Shown: positions 24,301-34,960 of the stretch, one piece after another | Layout of the letters: every line of letters starts with the position of its first letter | Numbering within the stretch: position 1 is the stretch's first letter | From: Cyanophora paradoxa CCMP329 | Taxonomy: Eukaryota > Plantae > Glaucophyta | Assembly (NCBI GenBank): GCA_004431415.1 | Contig: QPMI01000190.1 | Location: 62,001-126,000 of the forward strand | Direction of reading: 5' to 3' | Length of the DNA stretch: 64,000 nucleotides | Notes under the pieces: generated by a model | Told to the model about the DNA's origin: nothing | Databases searched by the model: none | The model's input: the letters and a program-made list of their open reading frames with translations, nothing else | Made by a program: the position numbers and the translations under genes

Positions 24301-27300
24301 CCTCGAGCCGGCCCTCGCCGCCCTCCGCCGCGCCCGCATCCTCCCCTCTGCGGGGCCCCGCGGGGGCGGCCGCCGAGGGCCCCTTCTACCTCCCCGGCGA
24401 GGCGGCCGCCGCTTACGGCTTCGAGGCGGAGCTCCGCGTGCTGGACCCCGCCGCGCTCGCCGCGCTGCCGCCGGCCGACGAGGCGGCGGCGCGGGGCGCG
24501 CTGGAGCGCCTCGGGGCGCGCCCAATGGACCCGCGCAGCGTCATCGCCGCGCACGTCGCCCGCGCATGGCCGCCTGCCCCGACCCCGCGCCGTCCGCCCT
24601 CTCCTGCATCCGCGCCCCCCGCTCATCGCCTCCCCTGACCCCCGCCCCCGCGTGCAGCTGGTGGGGTACCTGGCGTTCGTGCGGGACCACTTCGAGTCGG
24701 CGGTGCTGCGGGGGATGGAGGCGGCGGAGCAGGCCGCCCTCCGCGCCTCGGCCCGCCTGCTGGCGGTCCGCGGGGGCGACGAGCTCGCCGTGGCTCCCGG
24801 CGCCGCCCGCCTGCCGCCCCTCTACGGCGCCCCCGTCGACCTCGCCGCCCTCCCCGGCTGCCCCGCCGCCTTCCCCCTCCTCTCCCCCGCCTACGCCGCC
24901 GCCCTCCCGCCGGGCGCCCCGCCCCCCGCCGCCGCCTGGGGCCCCCTCTTCCGCTGGCTCGGCGTGCCCCCGCTGCTCGCCGCCGCCCCGCTCGCCCCGC
25001 TCCGCCTCACCGCCGCCGAGCGCGCCACCGACGCCCGCTGGGGCGCCGCCCCCGTCCTCTCCGACCCGCCGCCCTCCCCGCGAGGGCGAGGGCGAGGGCG
25101 AGGCCGGCCCGGCCGCGTGGCCCCCGCGGAGGCCTACGAGGTGCTCGACCACGAGTGCCCCGAGCTCCCCGAGCTGCTCGCGCGCCTCGCCGCCGCCGCC
25201 GCCTCGCCCGCCGCCGCCGCCGCCGCCCTCGCGCCCCTCGCCGCCGCCCTCGCCGCCGCCTGGGCCGAGCACTACGCCGCGCGCGCCCTCGCCGCCGTCA
25301 CGCCCTCGACGGCGCCGGGCGCCCCGCCGGGGCCCCTTCTCCGTCCCTCCGCCTTCCTCCTGCAGCTCCGCTCCCTCCCCTGGCTGCCCCTCCGCGCGGG
25401 CCCGCCGGCGAGGCGCGCCTTGGGCCGCCCTCCGGCGCCCTCCTCCCCGCCCCGAGCTGGTGCTCGTCTTCGGGGAGTGCGCGCTGTACGCGGCGGGGCC
25501 CGTCGAGCCGCCCGCCCTCGCCGCCGCCCTCGGCCTCGCCGCCCGCCCGACCCCGCCGCCCTCCTCGCCGCCCTCCGCCGCTGGGCCCGCCGCCCGCCGC
25601 CCCCTCCGACCCCGGGTCGGACTCGGGGGCCCCCGCAGCGCCGGCGCCGGACGGGGCCTGCCTGGGGCGCGTCTACGGGTGCCTCGCGGAGGCGCTCGCG
25701 GCGGGGCGGGCGGAGGGCGCCTCCCTCCGCGCCGCCTTCGAGCGGGGCGCGCTCCTCGGCGTGCCCCGCGCGGGCGCCGCGCCCCTCTTCATCGCCCCCG
25801 GGGCGGCCTGCTGGGAGGACGGGACGGGGGTGGTGGAGGAGGAGGGCGCCGTGCACGCCCTCGCCGAGCGCTACCCCGAGGCCCTCTGGCCCTTCTTCGA
25901 GGCCCTCGGCGTCCCCGCGCCCCGCCCCCCGCCGCCTGCCTCGCCGCCCTCCGCCGCCTCGCCGCCTCGGCCCCCGGCGCCTCCGCCGCCCGCGCCGCCG
26001 ACGCCGCCGCCCTCCTCGCGCACCTCGCCCGCTCCCTGCCGCCCCCGCCGCCCCGGGCCTCCCGACCCCTCCCCGCCGCCTTCGCCGGCTCCGCGCGCAC
26101 CGCCCGCCTCCTCCCGCCGCCGGGGGGCCTGGGCCTCGCTCGCCGAGGGCCCCCTCACGGACGAGTCCCCCGAGGGGCCCTCGCGCCCCTCTTCGAGCCC
26201 TGCCCCGCCCTGTCCTGTGCTTCGCGGGGGCGCGGCGGGGCCCCCCGTGCCCCGCGACGTGCGCGAAGCGGCGCTGGCGGCCGTTCGCCGCCTCGGCGTC
26301 CCCGACCTCGCCGAGGCCGCCGACCGCCGCGTCCTGCCCGGCGGCCCGCCCCGCCCGAGCCGCCCCTCACCTCCGCCCTCCGCCGTCTCCTCCCCTTCGC
26401 CCAGCGCTACCTGCGGGCCCGCCACCCGGGCCCTACGCCGCCGCCTGCGCCGCCGGCCTCCCCGCCGCCCTCGCCGCCCTCCGCGTCGCCAGCGCCCCGC
26501 GCCTCGCGGTCGCCTACGCGCTGGAGGGCCGCGAGTCGGCCCGCGCCCGGCCCCCTGCGCCCTCGACCCCTCCGACCCCGCCGCCCCGCGCCTCCTCTGC
26601 CGGGAGCGGGGGGCGGCCGCCGGGGCGGCGCTGCCGTCGCTGCTGGGGGAGCTGACGCGGCTCTTCTTCGGGGGGCGGCGGGAGTCGCCGCTGGCCAACT
26701 TCCTGGCCGTCCTCGCGGGGCTCCTGGGCGAGGGGGACGACCCGGCCGCCGGCGAGCGCGCCGAGGAGTACGCGCGCGGCTCCGAGCAGCTCCCGCCCCT
26801 CCCGGAGGGCGAGGCCGCCTGGGAGGCCCCCGACGAGCCCGAGGGGCCCGAGGGGCCCGAGGAGGCCGGCGCCTCCGGCCCGCACCCCGCCTCCTCCGCC
26901 CCGGAGGCCGAGGGGGAGGAGGAGGAGGACGTGACGGCGGAGGCGCTGGCAGCGACGGGGCGGGGGCGGGGCGGGCAGGAGGCCCCCGCCGGGGCCGGCC
27001 GCCCGGACCTCGAGGCGTACCTGGAGGCCAAGCGGGCGGAGGAGGCGGCGGCGCTGGCGGCGGGCCGGCAGGCCGGGGCCGATGTCGGTGCCCCGGGCGG
27101 CCCGTCTGCGGCCGGCGGCGCGGCGGGGTTCGTGATGGAGGAGGTAGACGCGGGGACGGCGGAGCGGGAGGCGCAGCGGATGCCGGTGCTGTACCGCAAC
27201 GCCGCCAGCAGGGGCGACCGCTCGGCCGTGGGCCGCTGGGGCGAGGAGTTCGTCTGGCGCTTTCTCGTGGCGACCCGCCCCGGGGCGGACGTGCGCTGGC

Positions 27301-27740
27301 TCAACAAGGAGGCCGAGACGGGGGCGGAGTACGACATCCGGGTGACGGAGGGGGACGGGAGGGTGGAGCTGGTGGAGGTGAAGGCGACGGCGACGGCGGA
27401 GAAGCACCTCTTCGAGGTCTCCTACCGCGAGTGGCACACCGCACAGATGGAGGGCGACGGTGCGCCCCCCCACCCGCCCCTGCATTTGCCCACCCTTCCA
27501 TCCCCCCGCCCACTCGTCCCGCCCGTACTGTGCGGACCTGCAGCCTTCACCATCTACCGTGTCTACAACGCGGGTGAGCGTCACTGAGTCACTGTCCAAC
27601 TTAATCTCTCTGCCAATTCTAGGTCCTTACGCATATGTGCATGGACCGCGGCAGGCACACCGGCAGTGAAGCTGACGCGAGTGCGGAACCCCTACCGCCA
27701 GTGGCGCGACCGCCGCATCGGCATCTGCTTCGCCCTCTAG
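18334..27740 (+). CDS. NOV: NO VEIN/sacsin-like GHKL ATPase with C-terminal DUF3883 (PD-(D/E)xK-type) domain, N-terminal P/Q- and RE-rich regions and a SWIM Zn finger
   Basis: LSEDLYAK|DIHLALELVQNADDNRY, FNNE|VGF, ICDVGASTK, IGCKGIGFKSVFHVTD, FAYLP|LRSYGLRFVVQADW; GRWGEEFV...WLN...YDI...VEVKAT...FEVSYREW; CDCPN...FCSHLYAV. Several apparent frameshifts in GC runs. Confidence 0.85.
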
Positions 27741-28029
27741 ACTCGAGTCTAGAGCCAAGCCTCTCCGAGTCAGCTCCGCCCCTCGCGATCGAGCTCGGCA
27801 TGAAGCTAATTGTTCGGACTCGAAATTCAACAACGTACGTATACTGTCATTCGCACACAGACGGAATGGAGGGAGGTTGGGAGGTTTTGGGAGGTGAGCA
27901 TCCGGACACCCCAAAGTGGGAGAGGGGGAAGGAGGTCCTTAAGCTTCCCCAATATATGTGCACGTGGGAGCATGCGCAGAGGCCAAGGGCCTAACGATGG
28001 GCTAGAAGACTAGCCGATGAGCCTCATGA

Positions 28030-31000
28030 TCACTGCCGGGAGGGGACGAAGGGACTCTTGGAGAGGGCCTGGCGAAAACCCCTGGAGCCTTCCGAGACCA
28101 CGGGCCACCGGTCGACCCCGAGCCTGCTGCAGGCCTTCTTGAGCGTCTTGGGATCGAGTTCGAGGTGCAGAGCCGCATCTTTCTGCTTCCAGCCTGCCTC
28201 GAAGAACCACCGGATGCAGTCGAGCGTGACCTTCTTGCTCCCCTTGCAAGGCTGCGGGGCCGTTCCAGACGGCGGGGCAGGCGGGACCTGCACGGACGGC
28301 AGGGCCGGCGGGGCCGGCGGGACCGGCGGGACCGGGGAGTAGGGCTGGTACTGCTCGAGGGGGGGCGGGGGGTAGGGCTGCTGCTGCCAGAGGGGGGGCG
28401 GGGGGTACAGCTGATCATGATGCTGCTCGAGAGGAGGGGGGTAGGGCGGCTGCTGCCCGAAGGGAAGCGGGGGAAAGAGCTGCAGGCGATGCTGAGCGTG
28501 TGGCTGCCCGAGCGGGGGGCTGGAGGGCGGCCACTCGGGGAGCGGCGGCACCCAGGGAGGCTCGAAGCGCAGCAGCCCGGGAGCACTGGAAGCGCACTCC
28601 CAAGTCTCTCCCGGGGACGCCTGGGCGGGAGATGGCGCGGCCACGGTCGCCCGCTTCACGGCCTTCCGCCCCGGGGCCTCCTCCGCCCCCGCCGTGTCGG
28701 CCGCCTGCAACCGCTTACCCTCCCCTGCCCGCCTGTCTGCGCCGGCCAAGGTCGGCCGGGGCAGCTTCGCCTTCGCCGCGCGCTCCTCCGCCGCCTCTTC
28801 CTCCGTAGCGCGCTCCTCGGCCGCCGCCTCCGCCTCCACCGCCGCCCCGGGCGCGTGCCGGGTCACCCCAGGCCCCGCGTCGCCGTCGCCTCGCGTCGCC
28901 ATCGCCCGGCACCGGGGCTCCGGCCGCCGCGGGCGAGCTAGCGGGCGCACGCTGGGCATTCCGACGAGGTCGGTGGCGGCGATCTTGAGGAGGCGCGCCT
29001 CGCCGTAGTGCTCCGGCAGCGACATCTGCTCGAACTGGGCCGGCGCCCCCCGCGCTCGCACCCCGGCGCCTCTGTCTGGGGTGGGGCCTCGCGGGGGGCG
29101 CGGCGCACGGAGAGGCACGGGAAGTCGCTCGGCTCGGGCCCCTCCTGCGAGGCCGGCGCCCCCTCGACGTAGATCTGGCCCCCCCGCTCAGGCGCCTCGG
29201 AGTGGATCGGAGCGCAGGCGGGCCCCGCGCACCGCCTTGATGGTGCCGACGAGGATGGAGGCGGCCCCTGAAACCTTCTCCCGCTCGTACCGCACCTTCA
29301 CCTGCCCCCCGCGAGCAGTCGCCCGGCTGAAGGGAGGCGAGGGGGAGGCGCGGGGCGCGCCCTGTGCCCCGGCTTGTACGTCGTCTTGCCGAGCTTGACG
29401 AAGTCGAGGGTGCGCCCGATCACCTGCCCCCGCCCGCCCCGCCGGCGCTCAGCTGCAGCCGGGGCCGGCCGGCGCCGGCGCCGCGCCCGCCTTCTTCGTG
29501 CGCGGCTCCTTGAAGTCGCCCGAGAAGCGCTCCGGGCAGGAGACCTGCCCCCGCGCTCAGCTTGTGATTCAGCCGCCCTTCTCTCCTCCGACATCGAGTA
29601 TAAAAAGGGGCGCGCCTCGTCGTCGAACTTGTGCCACTCCTTAACCCTGGCGCGGAACTCCCTGCGCAGCTCCTCGTACTCGTCCGCGATGAGCGCCTTG
29701 AAGGCCGCCGGGTTCACCGCCATCTGCGTCTGCGCCCCCGCGTCACCGCCCCGAGGGCGAGGCGAGGAGCGCCGCCGGCCCCGCCGCCCGGGAGGGGGGG
29801 GGGGGGGGGGGGGGGGGGGGAGGGAGGGAGGGAGGGAGGGAGAGGGGTGTGTGGGCGGGCCTTGTGGCTCTGCGGCTCGAACTCGCTGCTGAGGAAGAGG
29901 AAGCCGCGGACGCGGGGCCAGCACTCGAAGGGGAGCTCCCTGCTGCGCCGCCCCGGCTTGTCCATCCACGCCAGCCACTTCTTGTTGTTCGTCAGCGTCG
30001 CCTGCGCCATGCTCCTGCCGGGCGGCGCGTCGGCGGGGCCGGGGGACCTTGGGCCCCTCGCGGTCCCCCAGGCCCGTCTCCCGCACCGTCGACGTCTCCC
30101 GGTTCTTCAGCACGGGGAAGTACTTCAGGACGATCTGCCCGCCCCCAGCGGAGGCCGGCTTGAGCTCGAGGCTCGCGCGCTGGGCCCCGCGCGATCGATC
30201 GCGGACCGTGACTTCGACGGAGCGGCGCGAGCTCGTCTTCTCGTCCACGTACTGCACCGTGTACGTCTTCTCCCACCGCAGCCTGCGCGCCGGCCGGGCG
30301 TGGGTCGGCGTCGCGGGCTGGGCTGCGTCCGGCCTGACCTGGGGTCGCCCTGGCGGGGCCAGTCGTCGCCGGCGGCCGTCGCGGCGCCGGGCGGCGGGTG
30401 CAAGCACCGGTGGAGCGCCCGGACCTGATCGCGATCGCGGGAGCGAGCGCAGGCTTCAGAATAAGAAAGGCCAAGCGTGCAGGGCGCCACCGACCTCGTT
30501 CTCGATGGAGGCCTTCACTTCCGACGAGATGGCGGGCGGCGGATGCTCGAGCTGCGAGAGCGCGTACGGCAGCACGCTGCGGCCGCCGGCCGGCGTCAAA
30601 TCTAGGATCGCGCGGCAGGGAGAGAGAGAGAGAGTGGCGCACAGGCGCGTGAGCTCTTGTTTGCCCTGCTAGATCGCGATCAATCACTGACATGGGGCGA
30701 GAGAGCAGAGGGCAGCACGGGCGGCAGGCGAGGCGCACATCGTACTCCACGACGATGAGCTTGACAGGGCACAGAGCCTCGGGGAGCTGCATGGGCTGCT
30801 GGAGAGGCTGCTCGGGGTCGGGCAGGGGGAGGTGCTGGAGCCGCTCGGGGTCCTCCTTAAAGCCGCCGTGGAGGTAGAAGTGGTACGTCTCTGCGCGCCC
30901 CCCGCTCACCCAGAACTCTATCCCAACCGCAAGCGCAGCGTGATCGATATCATGAAGAATCAGGCGACCGGCAAGGAAGCGGATGATGGCCGTCTTGTGC

Positions 31001-32815
31001 GCCCTCCAGTAGTCCGGCACGCCGGCGTTCACCTCGCTGATCTCGATGCTGCGCGAGTGCGCGCGTGAGGCAACGCGGGGCGGTGCGCGAGAGGCTCGAG
31101 CTCGGGGCGCGGGCGCAGGGGCCGAACTGGGTGAAGGAGCCGACCTCGAGCTCGTCCGCGTTGGCGAGCGCCTGCTCGAACCTCGCCACGTGCTGCCGCC
31201 TCTGCTGGATCTCCCGCTGCACGCCCCCACCGCGCGTCAGTACTGGCGCGCGCCCAGGCGCCCCTCGCCCTCCTCTCTTTCTGTCGCTTCCGTCTTCACG
31301 TCATCTTTATCTTCATTCGTTCTATGCTGGCGCGTGAATTCAAAGCCGACGCACGAGGTCCATGTTGAGCCTGTAGACCGTCAGAGAGTCCTCGACCTTG
31401 GAGGTCAGCTTCAGGAGCGGGCCAAAGAAGAAGATCGCTGACTTGGCGCCGATCCCGAACCTGGCGCGGAGTTAGAAAGCTGCAGGGCGGGCGGGGCGCG
31501 CTCCAGGCACCGCGAGAACTCGCTGGTCATGTGGAAGCGGGAGCCCTCGACGGGGTCGACGAGGCTCGGGCGAACGTCCCTCTGGCCCTCGCGCACGTTC
31601 CCGCTGCTCGCCAGCCGCCCGAACTCCTTCATCTGCTCGTTGCTCATGCCGTAGCCTGCGGCGCCGGCACGTCCGTCAGGTCGCGGCAGATCTAGAGTCG
31701 GAGAGGGGTGCTGGAGGGGGTGCGAGGGGCTGGCGGGTGGGGGAGGCTAGGGGAAAGCACGACGGGGAATGCGACGGGAGAGGAGGATGGATGCTGGGAA
31801 GGGGTCGCCGGGGAGGTGGGAGCCTCGCGAGCGCTGTCGCGCCCTCCGGATCCCCCCTCGGCCCTCTCACCTCGCCCCTCCCCCCTCGGCCCTCTCCATA
31901 TCATTATGCTTCGAGAAGAAGCGTGCATGGCGGGGGGAGGGGGGGGGGGGTGGGGCCGGGGGAGGGGGGGAGATGAAGGGGGGGGGAATGCGCGGAGTGG
32001 GGGGGGGGGGGGTCCGGGATAGATACCGTCGTCGCTGATCTCGATGGTGCGGGCAGCCTCATCGATTCGGACCTCGATGGTCCTCTGCGACTTTGCCTTC
32101 GTTGCCTCCAGGCTGTTGTCCTGCGCGCGGCCCAGCCGCGCACCGGGCCGGCTTTAATGCCAGCGGGGCGGGCCAGAAATGCGATGCGGTCTCGCAAGGC
32201 GCACGATTAGCTCAGAGAGGGCGACCTCGACATTGATGTCCGTCGCCACCACGTCGTAGATCTGCCGGCGTCCATGAGCGGGGCTCGGAGCGCGCGAAAG
32301 TGGAGGGGCTCCACTCGGGAGACGTCGGGGTCCGCGTGAATTTCCTCCGCGTCGAGCGCGGGGGCGGTCTCGTTGGAGCTGGGTGTAGCCCCATAGTGAA
32401 CGAGGATCCTCTTGATGCCGAGCACGGCCGGAGGGCGGAGGTCGTCCGGCTCCAGCCGTCGGCCCGTCTGCACTCGACAGAACCGATCAACAACCGCGTG
32501 CGCGAGGCGTGAGCGGCGCTGTCGACGCGCTCGCTCAAGACTACGGACCTCTTTTAGCAGCTGAATGCACTGCGCATGCGCGGGAATTCGAAGCGGGGCG
32601 AGTAAGGTTACCGGTACGCCGCGCGCTCGCGTGTGCATGTGCGGCCTAGCCTCGAAGCGCTAGCTCCAGGCCTCGGGATGAACCGATCACAGGCCGAGCC
32701 GCTCACAAGGATCGTGAGGGCGCACCTGCGAGTCCACCCCAGCGAGTGCCGCGGCGTGGGTGAGGAGCTGGATGTTCGCCCTCTCCGGCGACTCGAGCTC
32801 GTTGAGCTCATACTG
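28030..32815 (-). CDS. SMCHD1-like GHKL ATPase/transducer/BAH-like module fused to a C-terminal RWP-RK-like domain
   Basis: ALSELI|DNSLEA, ISDDG|YGMS, SEFSR|FGIGAKSAIFFFG, SFT, ETYHFYLHG, ECWPRVRGFLF, KTTYKPG|VKV...LVGTIK; final exon KVTLDCIRWFF...KDAALHLELDPKTLKKACSRLGVDRWP. 5' end uncertain. Confidence 0.8.
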
Positions 32816-32923
32816 ACTAGCACGCGGCGGCCTCTTCTCGGGCTCTGAGCCGCTGAGCCTCTAGATCTGACTGGGCCGGCCGCCGGTTGGAAACGGGGTA
32901 GGCCTAGGTCGAGCTAGCTGGGT

Positions 32924-33010
32924 GCTCGCCGAGTCGACTCGGCGAGCGCTAGCTCGCCATCGGCATGCGCAGCTGCACTGCGGCAGCTGCCGCAGTGCAG
33001 CTGCGCATGC
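32924..33010. repeat. Two perfect palindromes (24 bp and 48 bp)
   Basis: GCTCGCCGAGTCGACTCGGCGAGC at 32924-32947; GCATGCGCAGCTGCACTGCGGCAG|CTGCCGCAGTGCAGCTGCGCATGC at 32963-33010. Confidence 0.95.
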
Positions 33011-33277
33011 GCGCGCGCATCATGGCATCAGCTCGAGCTCGCCATATGCATCGGCATGCGCAGCTGCCGCAGTGCGGATCCGGAGCTGAGGCGGCCAGCG
33101 CCGCGGCCGGCAACCGTACAGCCTGCAGGCTGCAGCTGGCCCGGGGCGGCGCCAGCGCCGGGCGGCCGCGGCGCCGGCGCGCGCCGAAGTCCTGCAAGCC
33201 GCTAGCCGGCGCCGGAGCTCACCTAGCTACGCTGGCCAGCTCGCGAGCCTGTCGGCTAGCTCGCCGGCTTAATGCAC

Positions 33278-34960
33278 GGGTACTGCAACTCGATAGGCCG
33301 AAACTCGCAGGAGCTCTTTTTTTCCGCGTTCGGTACAGCAGGTACTTGATGCGGCCTAGCGCGCCACGCGCTGCTTCCCGAGCACTGGCATGTATGACAA
33401 GCTCTGCCGAGCATTGCAAGAGCTTTCTTATGCACTTGGTCCGGCCCCTATGCGACCACAGGATCAGGCGCTGCAAGGGATAGTTTAGGAAAGGGTCCGG
33501 TCCTTTTTTCCGCGCAGCATTCCGCTCTTTCCGGGTTCTGACAACGAATTCGGGGCTCTGATGCATGCACTAACACTGGGTTAAGAGCTCGGAGCTGGAT
33601 CGGGAGATGAGCAGACTCGTCATTTTGTGAGTTACCGAAAACGGGGGCCCTACTAGCAGACCGCGCCCGGCCCTGTGCAAGATCGGCAAGTGCGGGCCGC
33701 GCGCGGAGGTGCAAGGGGGGGTACTGGTACACATTGCAGGGTACTTAGGGTGTGTGTGGGGGGGGGGGGAGGGGGGGCGGAGGGGGGGGGGGGCAGAGAG
33801 GCAAGGCGGCGGCCGGCGAGGCGGGCGGGGTCGCGAGGCGGGCAGGTGGGGTGGCGTCGCGGGCGGCGGCACCAGGCAGGCAGGCAGGCGAAGGCGGCGG
33901 CGGGCGGGGAAGCGGGCGGAGGGGGAGGGGCAGGTGGCGCCGGGCCCTGCGCAAATCCTGCACATACGCATGCGCAGAGCTGAGGCGTCAGCTCGCCCCG
34001 GACAGGGGCCGTGCGGGGGCGGGGCCCAGCGGGGGCGGCCGGGCCAGGTGTGCAGCAGCAGCGGCGGAGCGAACCTGGAGTCGACGACGCTGAGGCAGCC
34101 GGCAGGCGGCGGGCGGGGAAGCGGGCGGAGGGGCAGGTGTCGCCGGGCCCTTCGCATAGCCTGCGCAGGGCCGAGGCGTCAGCTCGCCCCGCGGCCGGAC
34201 AGCCGCGGCGCAGGGGCGGGGCCGAGCCCGGCGCGACGTACTAGGAGCAGCTGCGAATGCTGCGACGCCGCGGCCGCCACACTCTGATACGGAACGCCGG
34301 CCGCGGTTCAAGCCACGCATACGTGGGGCCGCGGCCGAGGCGTGCAGGTGGCGACCCGCCCCGTGCTTAAACTGCGCTTGAAGGGCTTGACAACATCGAG
34401 CTGGAGTCTGCTTGATCACGAATCGGAGTCCGTCAGAAACCGAGAGCGTTGGCAAAACGCCGCGGCCGCGGGCGCGCACACAGCCGGCGTCGCGGCGTCT
34501 CGGGCGCCTTCTTCCTGCACTCTCTCGGCGCTCTCCGCCACCAGGAGCGGCTGTGCCCGCATTCGCCACCAGGAGCGCATCCGCGGCTGTGCCCGCACGG
34601 TGCTGCTGTCGCCGCCGAGGCCGCAGCCGGAAGCGCACCGGAACGCGACGTTGCGGGCGCGCCGCTCCGCCGCTCCGCCGCCGCTCCGCCTCGAGCTCGG
34701 CACGCCGCTCCGCCTACGCAGAACGAAGTCCGGGATCCGGGTACTGTAACGCGATTGGCCGAAACTCTCAGGAGCACTTTTTTCCGGCGCCCGGTACAAC
34801 AGGTACTTGAGGCGGCCTAGCGCGCCACGCGCCGCGTCTCGAGCCCAGGCATGTATGACTGAGTTTGTAGAGCGCATTGAGAGCATTCAGGAGCACGCGG
34901 TCCGGCGCATATAGCGATAGCGGGTGAGGAGCGGCTTCGACATGTTTGCGCAGCCCCGCC
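33278..34960 (+). repeat. Diverged direct repeat of about 200 bp (copies start at 33278 and 34740)
   Basis: Both copies read GGGTACTGyAAC.CGAT.GGCCGAAACTC.CAGGAGC.CTTTTTT...CAGGTACTTGA.GCGGCCTAGCGCGCCACGCGC...GGCATGTATGAC. Confidence 0.9.
33885..34230 (+). repeat. Second diverged direct repeat of about 130 bp (about 33885-34030 and 34100-34230)
   Basis: GGCGGCGGGCGGGGAAGCGGGCGGAGGGG...GCAGGTG.CGCCGGGCCCT.CGCA...GAGGCGTCAGCTCGCCCCG occurs twice. Confidence 0.85.

Follow-up and report, generated by a model that had tools for sequence, protein, structure and literature searches.

A chimeric transcript joining an SMCHD1-type gene fragment to an RWP-RK-like frame in Cyanophora paradoxa: a candidate young, partly degenerated duplicate

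Can a chromatin-silencing ATPase be aimed at specific DNA by gaining the DNA-binding domain of a transcription factor? The question is raised by a minus-strand gene of about 20 exons (about 32881 to 27654) in a 64,000-nucleotide stretch of the genome of the glaucophyte Cyanophora paradoxa CCMP329 (contig QPMI01000190.1, positions 62,001 to 126,000). This stretch, with a G+C content of about 70-80%, is called the window here, and all positions refer to it. A preliminary description, made from the letters alone, took the gene to encode a GHKL ATPase of the SMCHD1 type with an RWP-RK domain in place of its SMC hinge, and inferred that this domain guides a chromatin or silencing ATPase to specific DNA. 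Such an architecture does exist in the locus, in its transcripts and in the annotation. Nevertheless, a transcription-factor domain is unlikely to be directing a working ATPase here. With moderate confidence, the locus is interpreted as a young chimeric and partly degenerated duplicate, giving rise to a chimeric transcript whose full-length frame is broken; it is probably non-functional, or coding in its C-terminal part only.

A partial copy of an SMCHD1-type gene

When searched by phmmer against 1.84 billion representative proteins, one exon of the gene (exon B, 103 residues) matched two proteins only, both of them EukProt models of C. paradoxa on different contigs. The first, tig00000821_g4493.t1 (809 residues, starting with MSNEQ and ending with RWPVV..SRQ), matches the window at 100% identity and will be called the annotated model of the gene. 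The second, tig00020554_g10937.t1 (2060 residues, hereafter the paralogue), lies on another contig. The two are 87% identical over 506 residues and part exactly after AATDLVGMPS, beyond which the paralogue extends over some 1550 further residues up to an SMC hinge (PF06470, 27.3 bits, cut-off 22.5). With this hinge and an SMCHD1_S5 domain, in addition to HATPase_c_3, the paralogue is by its domain content the canonical SMCHD1/GMI1-type protein of this alga. In the copy, a linker and an RWP-RK-like domain take the place of all of these 1550 or so residues beyond DLVGMPS, including the hinge, whose replacement the preliminary description had proposed. No SMC_hinge domain was detected in the annotated model, and tblastn with paralogue residues 507-2060 found no match in the 64-kb window. 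The point of divergence reads GTGCGC, which is also the commonest splice donor of the window gene.

Transcription across this breakpoint is evident from public data. Parts of the stretch occur in 17 public runs, four of which (from three studies) were placed on 27600-33400 as Logan contigs, cited here by run and record; such contigs give the dominant path only and may be chimeric between paralogues. Joints with CT..AC ends, i.e. GT..AG on the minus strand, occur in all four runs and show that spliced RNA is present. After adjustment of ambiguous cuts, 18 of 18 introns (50-371 nt) are of the GT-AG or GC-AG type. A single contig of 2546 nt (X1 record 2) spans 32843 to 28400, and further contigs cover 28719-28181, 28337-28086 and 28328-27654. 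The breakpoint at 28953 is crossed without mismatch by spliced contigs from all three studies, and window-specific spliced contigs follow the path 29301-29233 | 29174-29109 | 29034-28400, again with 0 mismatches. The last exon, which begins at 29034 with FEQMSLPEHYGEA, stays open through the RWP-RK-like domain to a stop at 28032-28030, in agreement with the preliminary description. The single transcript across 29.0-28.1 kb that the latter implied is thus confirmed as regards the crossing of 28953, but not as regards an intact frame, since the upstream RNA frame is broken (see below).

These features may be accounted for by a partial duplication that took an internal part of a canonical SMCHD1/GMI1-type gene. 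As introns are retained, the duplication would have occurred at the DNA level, and the parent gene would persist as tig00020554_g10937, with GHKL, S5, long middle and SMC hinge. The copied segment would end within the intron following the exon that closes with ..DLVGMPS, leaving the donor GTGCGC without its partner in the copy. Transcripts therefore continue past it, over 17 codons that look non-coding, and enter a neighbouring open frame, which comprises 290 codons from an ATG at 28902 and ends in a divergent RWP-RK-like, putatively helix-turn-helix domain. A pre-existing RKD-like frame of 290 codons that happened to be in phase (chance about 0.28) would be a reasonable origin for this part. 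Any protein made is more likely to be a C-terminal product than a targeted ATPase. It might come from the 290-residue RKD-like open reading frame (ORF) or from an ORF of about 500 residues that starts at an ATG at 30010.

Gene structure and the ATPase module

Exons were searched against profiles one by one, and phases were followed from exon to exon with split codons carried over; the two database models served as full-length stand-ins. A three-frame translation of the minus strand placed the GHKL, YHFYLHG and ECWPRVRGFLF motifs where the preliminary description had put them, and RNA-supported GT/GC..AG junctions join their exons. The features, all on the minus strand, are as follows.

32726..32881: most upstream transcribed exon seen (RNA contigs X2 record 9 and X1 record 2; donor GT at 32725)
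32549..32569: candidate 21-nt micro-exon, CIQLLKE, putative
32315..32467: exon upstream of the GHKL N-box, containing LEPDDLRPPAVLGIKRILVHYG (contig pieces and a putative GT..AG intron, 32262-32314)
32205..32261: exon ending in ALSELI, first half of GHKL motif I (RNA contigs)
32027..32120: exon DNSLEA...EISDDG, rest of motif I (N-box) and start of motif II (X7 record 22, joint 31654/32026); weak HATPase_c match
31511..31655: exon (G)YGMSNEQ (RNA joints); the annotated model begins at its Met
31355..31460: exon with FGIGAK, GHKL motif III; HATPase_c_3 E 7.7e-5, below the family cut-off; aligns to SMCHD1 FGVGGK
31128..31216: exon A; the annotated donor 31128 keeps the frame, the RNA contig path implies donor 31145
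30739..31048: exon B, IEISEVN...YHFYLHGG...VVEYD; contiguous over 30738-31048 with 0 mismatches in four runs
30665-30643, 30576-30495, 30424-30339, 30282-30207, 30134-30087: five small exons (RNA joints; translation agrees with the annotated model); S5-like region, first half, including WEKTYTVQYVDEK and IVLKYFPVLKNRETST
30015..30047: damaged S5 core, with a 25-nt C/G-rich segment
29861..30014: exon with ECWPRVRGFLF, second half of SMCHD1_S5 (E 1.6e-4); aligns to SMCHD1 IECYNRISGALF
29729-29616, 29544-29491, 29423-29361, 29301-29233, 29174-29109: five phase-0 exons (RNA joints, frames)
28954..29034: start of the last exon, to DLVGMPS; homology to the paralogue ends with this stretch
28948..28953: GTGCGC, a splice donor left orphaned and read through by RNA; point of divergence from the paralogue
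28282..28953: linker, acidic and Ala-rich, then Pro/Gln-rich (from the sequence)
28102..28227: RWP-RK-like domain, LDPKTLKKACSRLGVDRWPVV (PF02042 match; RK replaced by VV)
27654..28032: stop codon (28032-28030) and 3' untranslated region (contigs X2 record 3, X3 records 10-12, X7 record 17)

The micro-exon is suggested by 21 letters of X1 record 2 that are left unplaced between 32467 and 32726; among the AG-N21-GT candidates, 32549..32569 alone combines an open frame with canonical flanks. GHKL motifs I, II and III (ELI|DNS, DDG|YGM and FGIGAK) all lie in RNA-supported exons, across the junctions SELI|DNSLEA (32205|32120), ISDDG|YGMSNEQ (32027|31655) and EFSR|FGIGAK (31511|31460). The annotated model starts too late to include motif I or the Asp of motif II. 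Its match to SMCHD1_S5 (PF22899) reaches 30.1 bits (cut-off 27) over profile positions 87-166 only, compared to 37.1 bits over positions 26-166 for the paralogue. Both Cyanophora proteins align to the mouse SMCHD1 structure 6MW7. Taken with the domain content of the paralogue, the gene is of the SMCHD1 type as far as its sequence can tell, in line with the preliminary description. Sequence searches of the PDB with the RWP-RK end and the N-terminal exons returned nothing useful.

The exons of 29109..29729, previously described as a BAH-like block, belong to a post-S5 region common to the paralogue. For 29729-28954, neither a Pfam match at E up to 10 nor an ESM-Atlas feature match was found, and the AlphaFold model was unusable (predicted local distance difference test score, pLDDT, 31). 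The label was abandoned for want of profile, Atlas feature or fold support.

Four consecutive introns with GC donors (GCGCGC, GCGGGC, GCGCGC and GCCCGC) occur within 29302-29860, three of them with direct RNA joints, an unusual local density of GC-AG introns. Long C-rich tracts, poly-Pro in any open frame, are found at 29780-29855 and 31940-32010 on the minus strand, within introns of 131 nt and 371 nt; they break RNA contigs and probably account for the start of both annotated paralogue models only at MSNEQ. At the 5' end, the RNA contig X2 record 8 follows the genome without a break through introns 32262-32314 and 32121-32204 (region 32204-32467), so that unspliced and spliced 5' forms coexist.

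Signs of decay in the SMCHD1-derived half

One lesion lies in the S5 core. The VWQGR motif of the paralogue, within GPKVYTVWQGRSMAQ, aligns to FWNGR of mouse SMCHD1. The 15 nt that encode YTVWQ in the paralogue are replaced in the window by the 25-nt C/G-rich segment, a frameshift of +10 nt. The annotation restores the frame by an intron of 46 nt (30047-30002) that is seen in none of the RNA contigs. Window-specific contigs of four of the four runs are instead spliced 30087|30014, which removes 72 nt (30086-30015), does not restore the frame, and leads to a premature stop in the next exon.

A second break, at exon A, is more weakly indicated. Donor 31128 (VGSFT/H) keeps the frame and matches DSFTA of SMCHD1. 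The contig path comprises 72 nt of exon A versus the 89 nt needed (by record coordinates; depth 3.46/9.31 over the bin), which points to a donor at 31145 and puts a stop within exon B. The weakness lies in the identity of exon A between the paralogues, which contigs may mix. Within exon B, an in-frame intron of 78 nt (30968-30891) is retained in all four runs; neither of the models nor the SMCHD1 alignment contains its 26 residues (RFLA|ETYHFYLHG vs RQLAHIYHYYIHG).

The 5' end points in the same direction. The frame carrying ELIDNS and DDG meets a stop at 32863-32861, and no in-frame ATG occurs between this stop and MSNEQ; a protein made from the first ATG would thus lack the Mg-ATP-binding N-box. 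Overall, the RNA junctions break the frame at 31145|31048 and 30087|30014 and leave no continuous mRNA frame. The spliced exons, previously read as one protein, are joined in RNA as far as the motif junctions are concerned, but not in a single frame. The continuous frame of the 809-residue annotated model depends on three splice choices absent from the RNA contigs, which calls for caution in annotation. We infer that the SMCHD1-derived half is decaying and that the main RNA form would yield no single protein with the RWP-RK end.

Several points weigh against this interpretation. Of the 16 junctions of the annotated model, 13 are confirmed by or consistent with RNA, the three lacking such support being exactly those needed for its continuous frame. 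Seven exons, from 30014 to the stop, share one frame. A minor in-frame isoform may exist, since contigs keep the dominant path, and the 31145 donor might be that of the paralogue. Indeed, some contigs carry paralogue letters at 29911, 31551 and 31578 (V>I, V>L, D>N). The true 5' end and start codon were found for neither paralogue, and a word-based search yielded no stand-alone relative of the 290-codon ORF.

The RWP-RK-like end and the linker

Downstream of the breakpoint the frame is open for 307 codons. Taken alone, the terminal domain matches PF02042 with 27.3 bits (E 3.4e-6, profile positions 3-42 of 49), just under the gathering cut-off of 29.3; as a single ORF piece it gave an RWP-RK match of E 3.5e-5. 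In its signature GVDRWPVVSEG the RWP is kept, but the RK pair of RWPxRK has become VV. The closest ESM-Atlas feature neighbours are three RWP-RK clusters (0.88-0.90), and the ten best of ten belong to the same family. An AlphaFold model of the domain shows three helices at low confidence (mean pLDDT 59.6); in an Atlas shape search with this low-confidence model, an NLP9/RWP-RK cluster made up one of the ten matches listed (TM score 0.55), most of the others being bacterial LuxR/GerE-type helix-turn-helix regulators. The earlier assignment of the C-terminus to RWP-RK is therefore upheld by E-value and Atlas neighbours, but weakened by the sub-threshold score and the missing RK. Word-based searches with the 290-residue ORF and the RWP-RK region, and likewise with the N-terminal 505 residues, recovered the gene itself only; as they use length windows and five-residue words, such blanks carry little weight.

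The ATG at 28902-28900 opens the 290-codon ORF that runs to the stop. Codon-position G+C is coding-like from 28902 on (0.87-0.89 at third and 0.55-0.67 at second positions), and flat in the 17 codons 28953-28903 between breakpoint and ATG. From local composition, the chance of an open frame is about 0.09 for 224 codons and about 0.83 for the 17-codon bridge. The other candidate, the ORF of about 500 residues whose ATG is at 30010-30008, is present in the observed RNA.

An alternative RNA form of the linker was seen at 28694-28822 in three runs, with 127 nt replaced by 10 letters (net -117 nt, in frame) and a depth like that of the colinear form in two of the three. It could represent an allele, a strain variant, or a second genomic copy of the 3' region.

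Alternative explanations

The locus might instead comprise two genes, an independent RKD-like gene (ATG 28902, 290 residues, own promoter) behind an SMCHD1 pseudogene, the fusion then being nothing but read-through RNA and an annotation artefact. This we consider rather unlikely, in spite of several points in its favour. Coding periodicity begins at about 28902 and not at 28953; an open, in-frame bridge of 17 codons would arise by chance with a probability of about 0.28; and a short protein with a C-terminal RWP-RK domain has the usual RKD layout. RKD genes are present in all species analysed by TAPscan v4 (PMC11712027). In run X7, moreover, depth is 11-18 in 3' contigs and 4-9 upstream, with no contigs in 28764-29345, but contig depth is a poor measure, and a 3' bias would have the same effect. 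No start of transcription was seen, spliced contigs specific to the window continue from 29109 via 28953 to 28400, and no homologue of the 290-residue ORF was found.

Alternatively, the SMCHD1 GHKL-S5 module and the C-terminal RWP-RK-like domain could form a functional fusion, expressed as a minor or condition-specific in-frame isoform. Its role might be that of a silencing ATPase targeted by sequence or, through GHKL dimerisation, that of a partner or antagonist of the canonical paralogue. The 809-residue model is on record, the junction is crossed by RNA from three studies, between 30014 and the stop all exons are in phase 0 and the frame stays open, the linker shows coding-like periodicity, and in-frame alternatives are available at both breaks. 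Against this, the dominant RNA of four runs loses the frame at 30087|30014 and, it appears, at 31145|31048 too. The VWQGR motif of S5 is missing even from the in-frame model, which also lacks motif I and the Asp of motif II, and no ATG precedes motifs I and II in the RNA. Finally, the RWP-RK domain is devoid of RK and falls under the Pfam cut-off, and no orthologue with the same architecture was found. Such a fusion is thus improbable, and the working, DNA-aimed ATPase of the preliminary description is not supported, in view of the young partial duplication, the frameshifted S5, the frame-breaking splicing, the missing ATG and the sub-threshold domain without RK. Slimmer still are the prospects of a more specific version, in which a minor or condition-specific in-frame isoform, composed of the GHKL dimerisation module, a crippled S5 and the RWP-RK-like domain, would act on the canonical paralogue at specific DNA sites, either recruiting or poisoning it.

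A wrong assembly joining an SMCHD1 5' half to an unrelated RWP-RK gene is very improbable despite the low-complexity, GC-rich sequence near the breakpoint and some chimeric RNA contigs (e.g. the joint of 28328 to 33090), since 28953 is crossed by independent RNA contigs of three studies with 0 mismatches, runs of unrecorded type contain up to 79% of the words of the stretch, and a 13% residue difference from the paralogue marks a separate locus.

Comparison with known systems

With SMCHD1 of animals, GMI1 of Arabidopsis and the canonical paralogue, the window gene shares GHKL motifs I-III, the SFT..YHxYxHG segment and part of SMCHD1_S5, with ECW/Y.R..G.LF. Unlike these, it lacks the SMC hinge and a middle part of about 1500 residues, it has lost VWQGR/FWNGR by a frameshifting replacement, and its dominant RNA is out of frame. 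Its C-terminal part resembles the RKD type (Chlamydomonas MID, plant RKDs) in the C-terminal position of the domain, in the core TLKK.CR.LG..RWP and in having RWP-RK clusters as nearest Atlas neighbours. It differs by the change of RK to VV, the sub-threshold score, the lack of a detectable close relative, and the SMCHD1-derived exons that precede the ORF in frame.

Young genes of the jingwei type are chimeras born by partial duplication and exon read-through. The duplicate favoured here is similar to them in its intron-bearing internal fragment of a parent gene, orphaned donor, read-through and intact parent elsewhere. In contrast to jingwei-type genes, the recruited fragment is already frameshifted and aberrantly spliced, which makes a function of the chimera doubtful. 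As it stands, the locus has modest value as a well-documented case of partial duplication, caught during gene birth or decay, with the parent retained, the breakpoint marked by an orphaned donor, and read-through into a neighbouring frame. If the fusion were functional, a hinge-dependent chromatin compactor would be convertible into a sequence-targeted factor, and one more would be added to the RWP-RK fusions of this glaucophyte, whose variety has already been noted. Should the in-frame isoform prove real, it would provide a natural case of a silencing ATPase re-aimed by capture of a transcription-factor domain. In the literature, nothing relevant was found on RWP-RK together with GHKL or SMCHD1, nor on SMCHD1 in Cyanophora. 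The architecture, which according to the preliminary description is not known to be described, was met in no paper or other protein, but it is already catalogued as a predicted protein in EukProt.

Flanking sequences

Upstream of the gene, 33032-33225 contains short palindromic GC-rich repeats of the GCTGCAGC and GCGCATGC types, with a contig depth above that of the gene and odd joints to 28328 and 32574. These joints are likely to be repeat-driven contig chimeras or an alternative 5' exon. On the other side, a convergent gene on the plus strand (25155-27587) ends about 60 nt from the 3' untranslated region of the fusion gene; its very GC-rich, low-complexity ORF carries a NO VEIN C-terminal domain (PF13020, 49.7 bits, E 4e-13).

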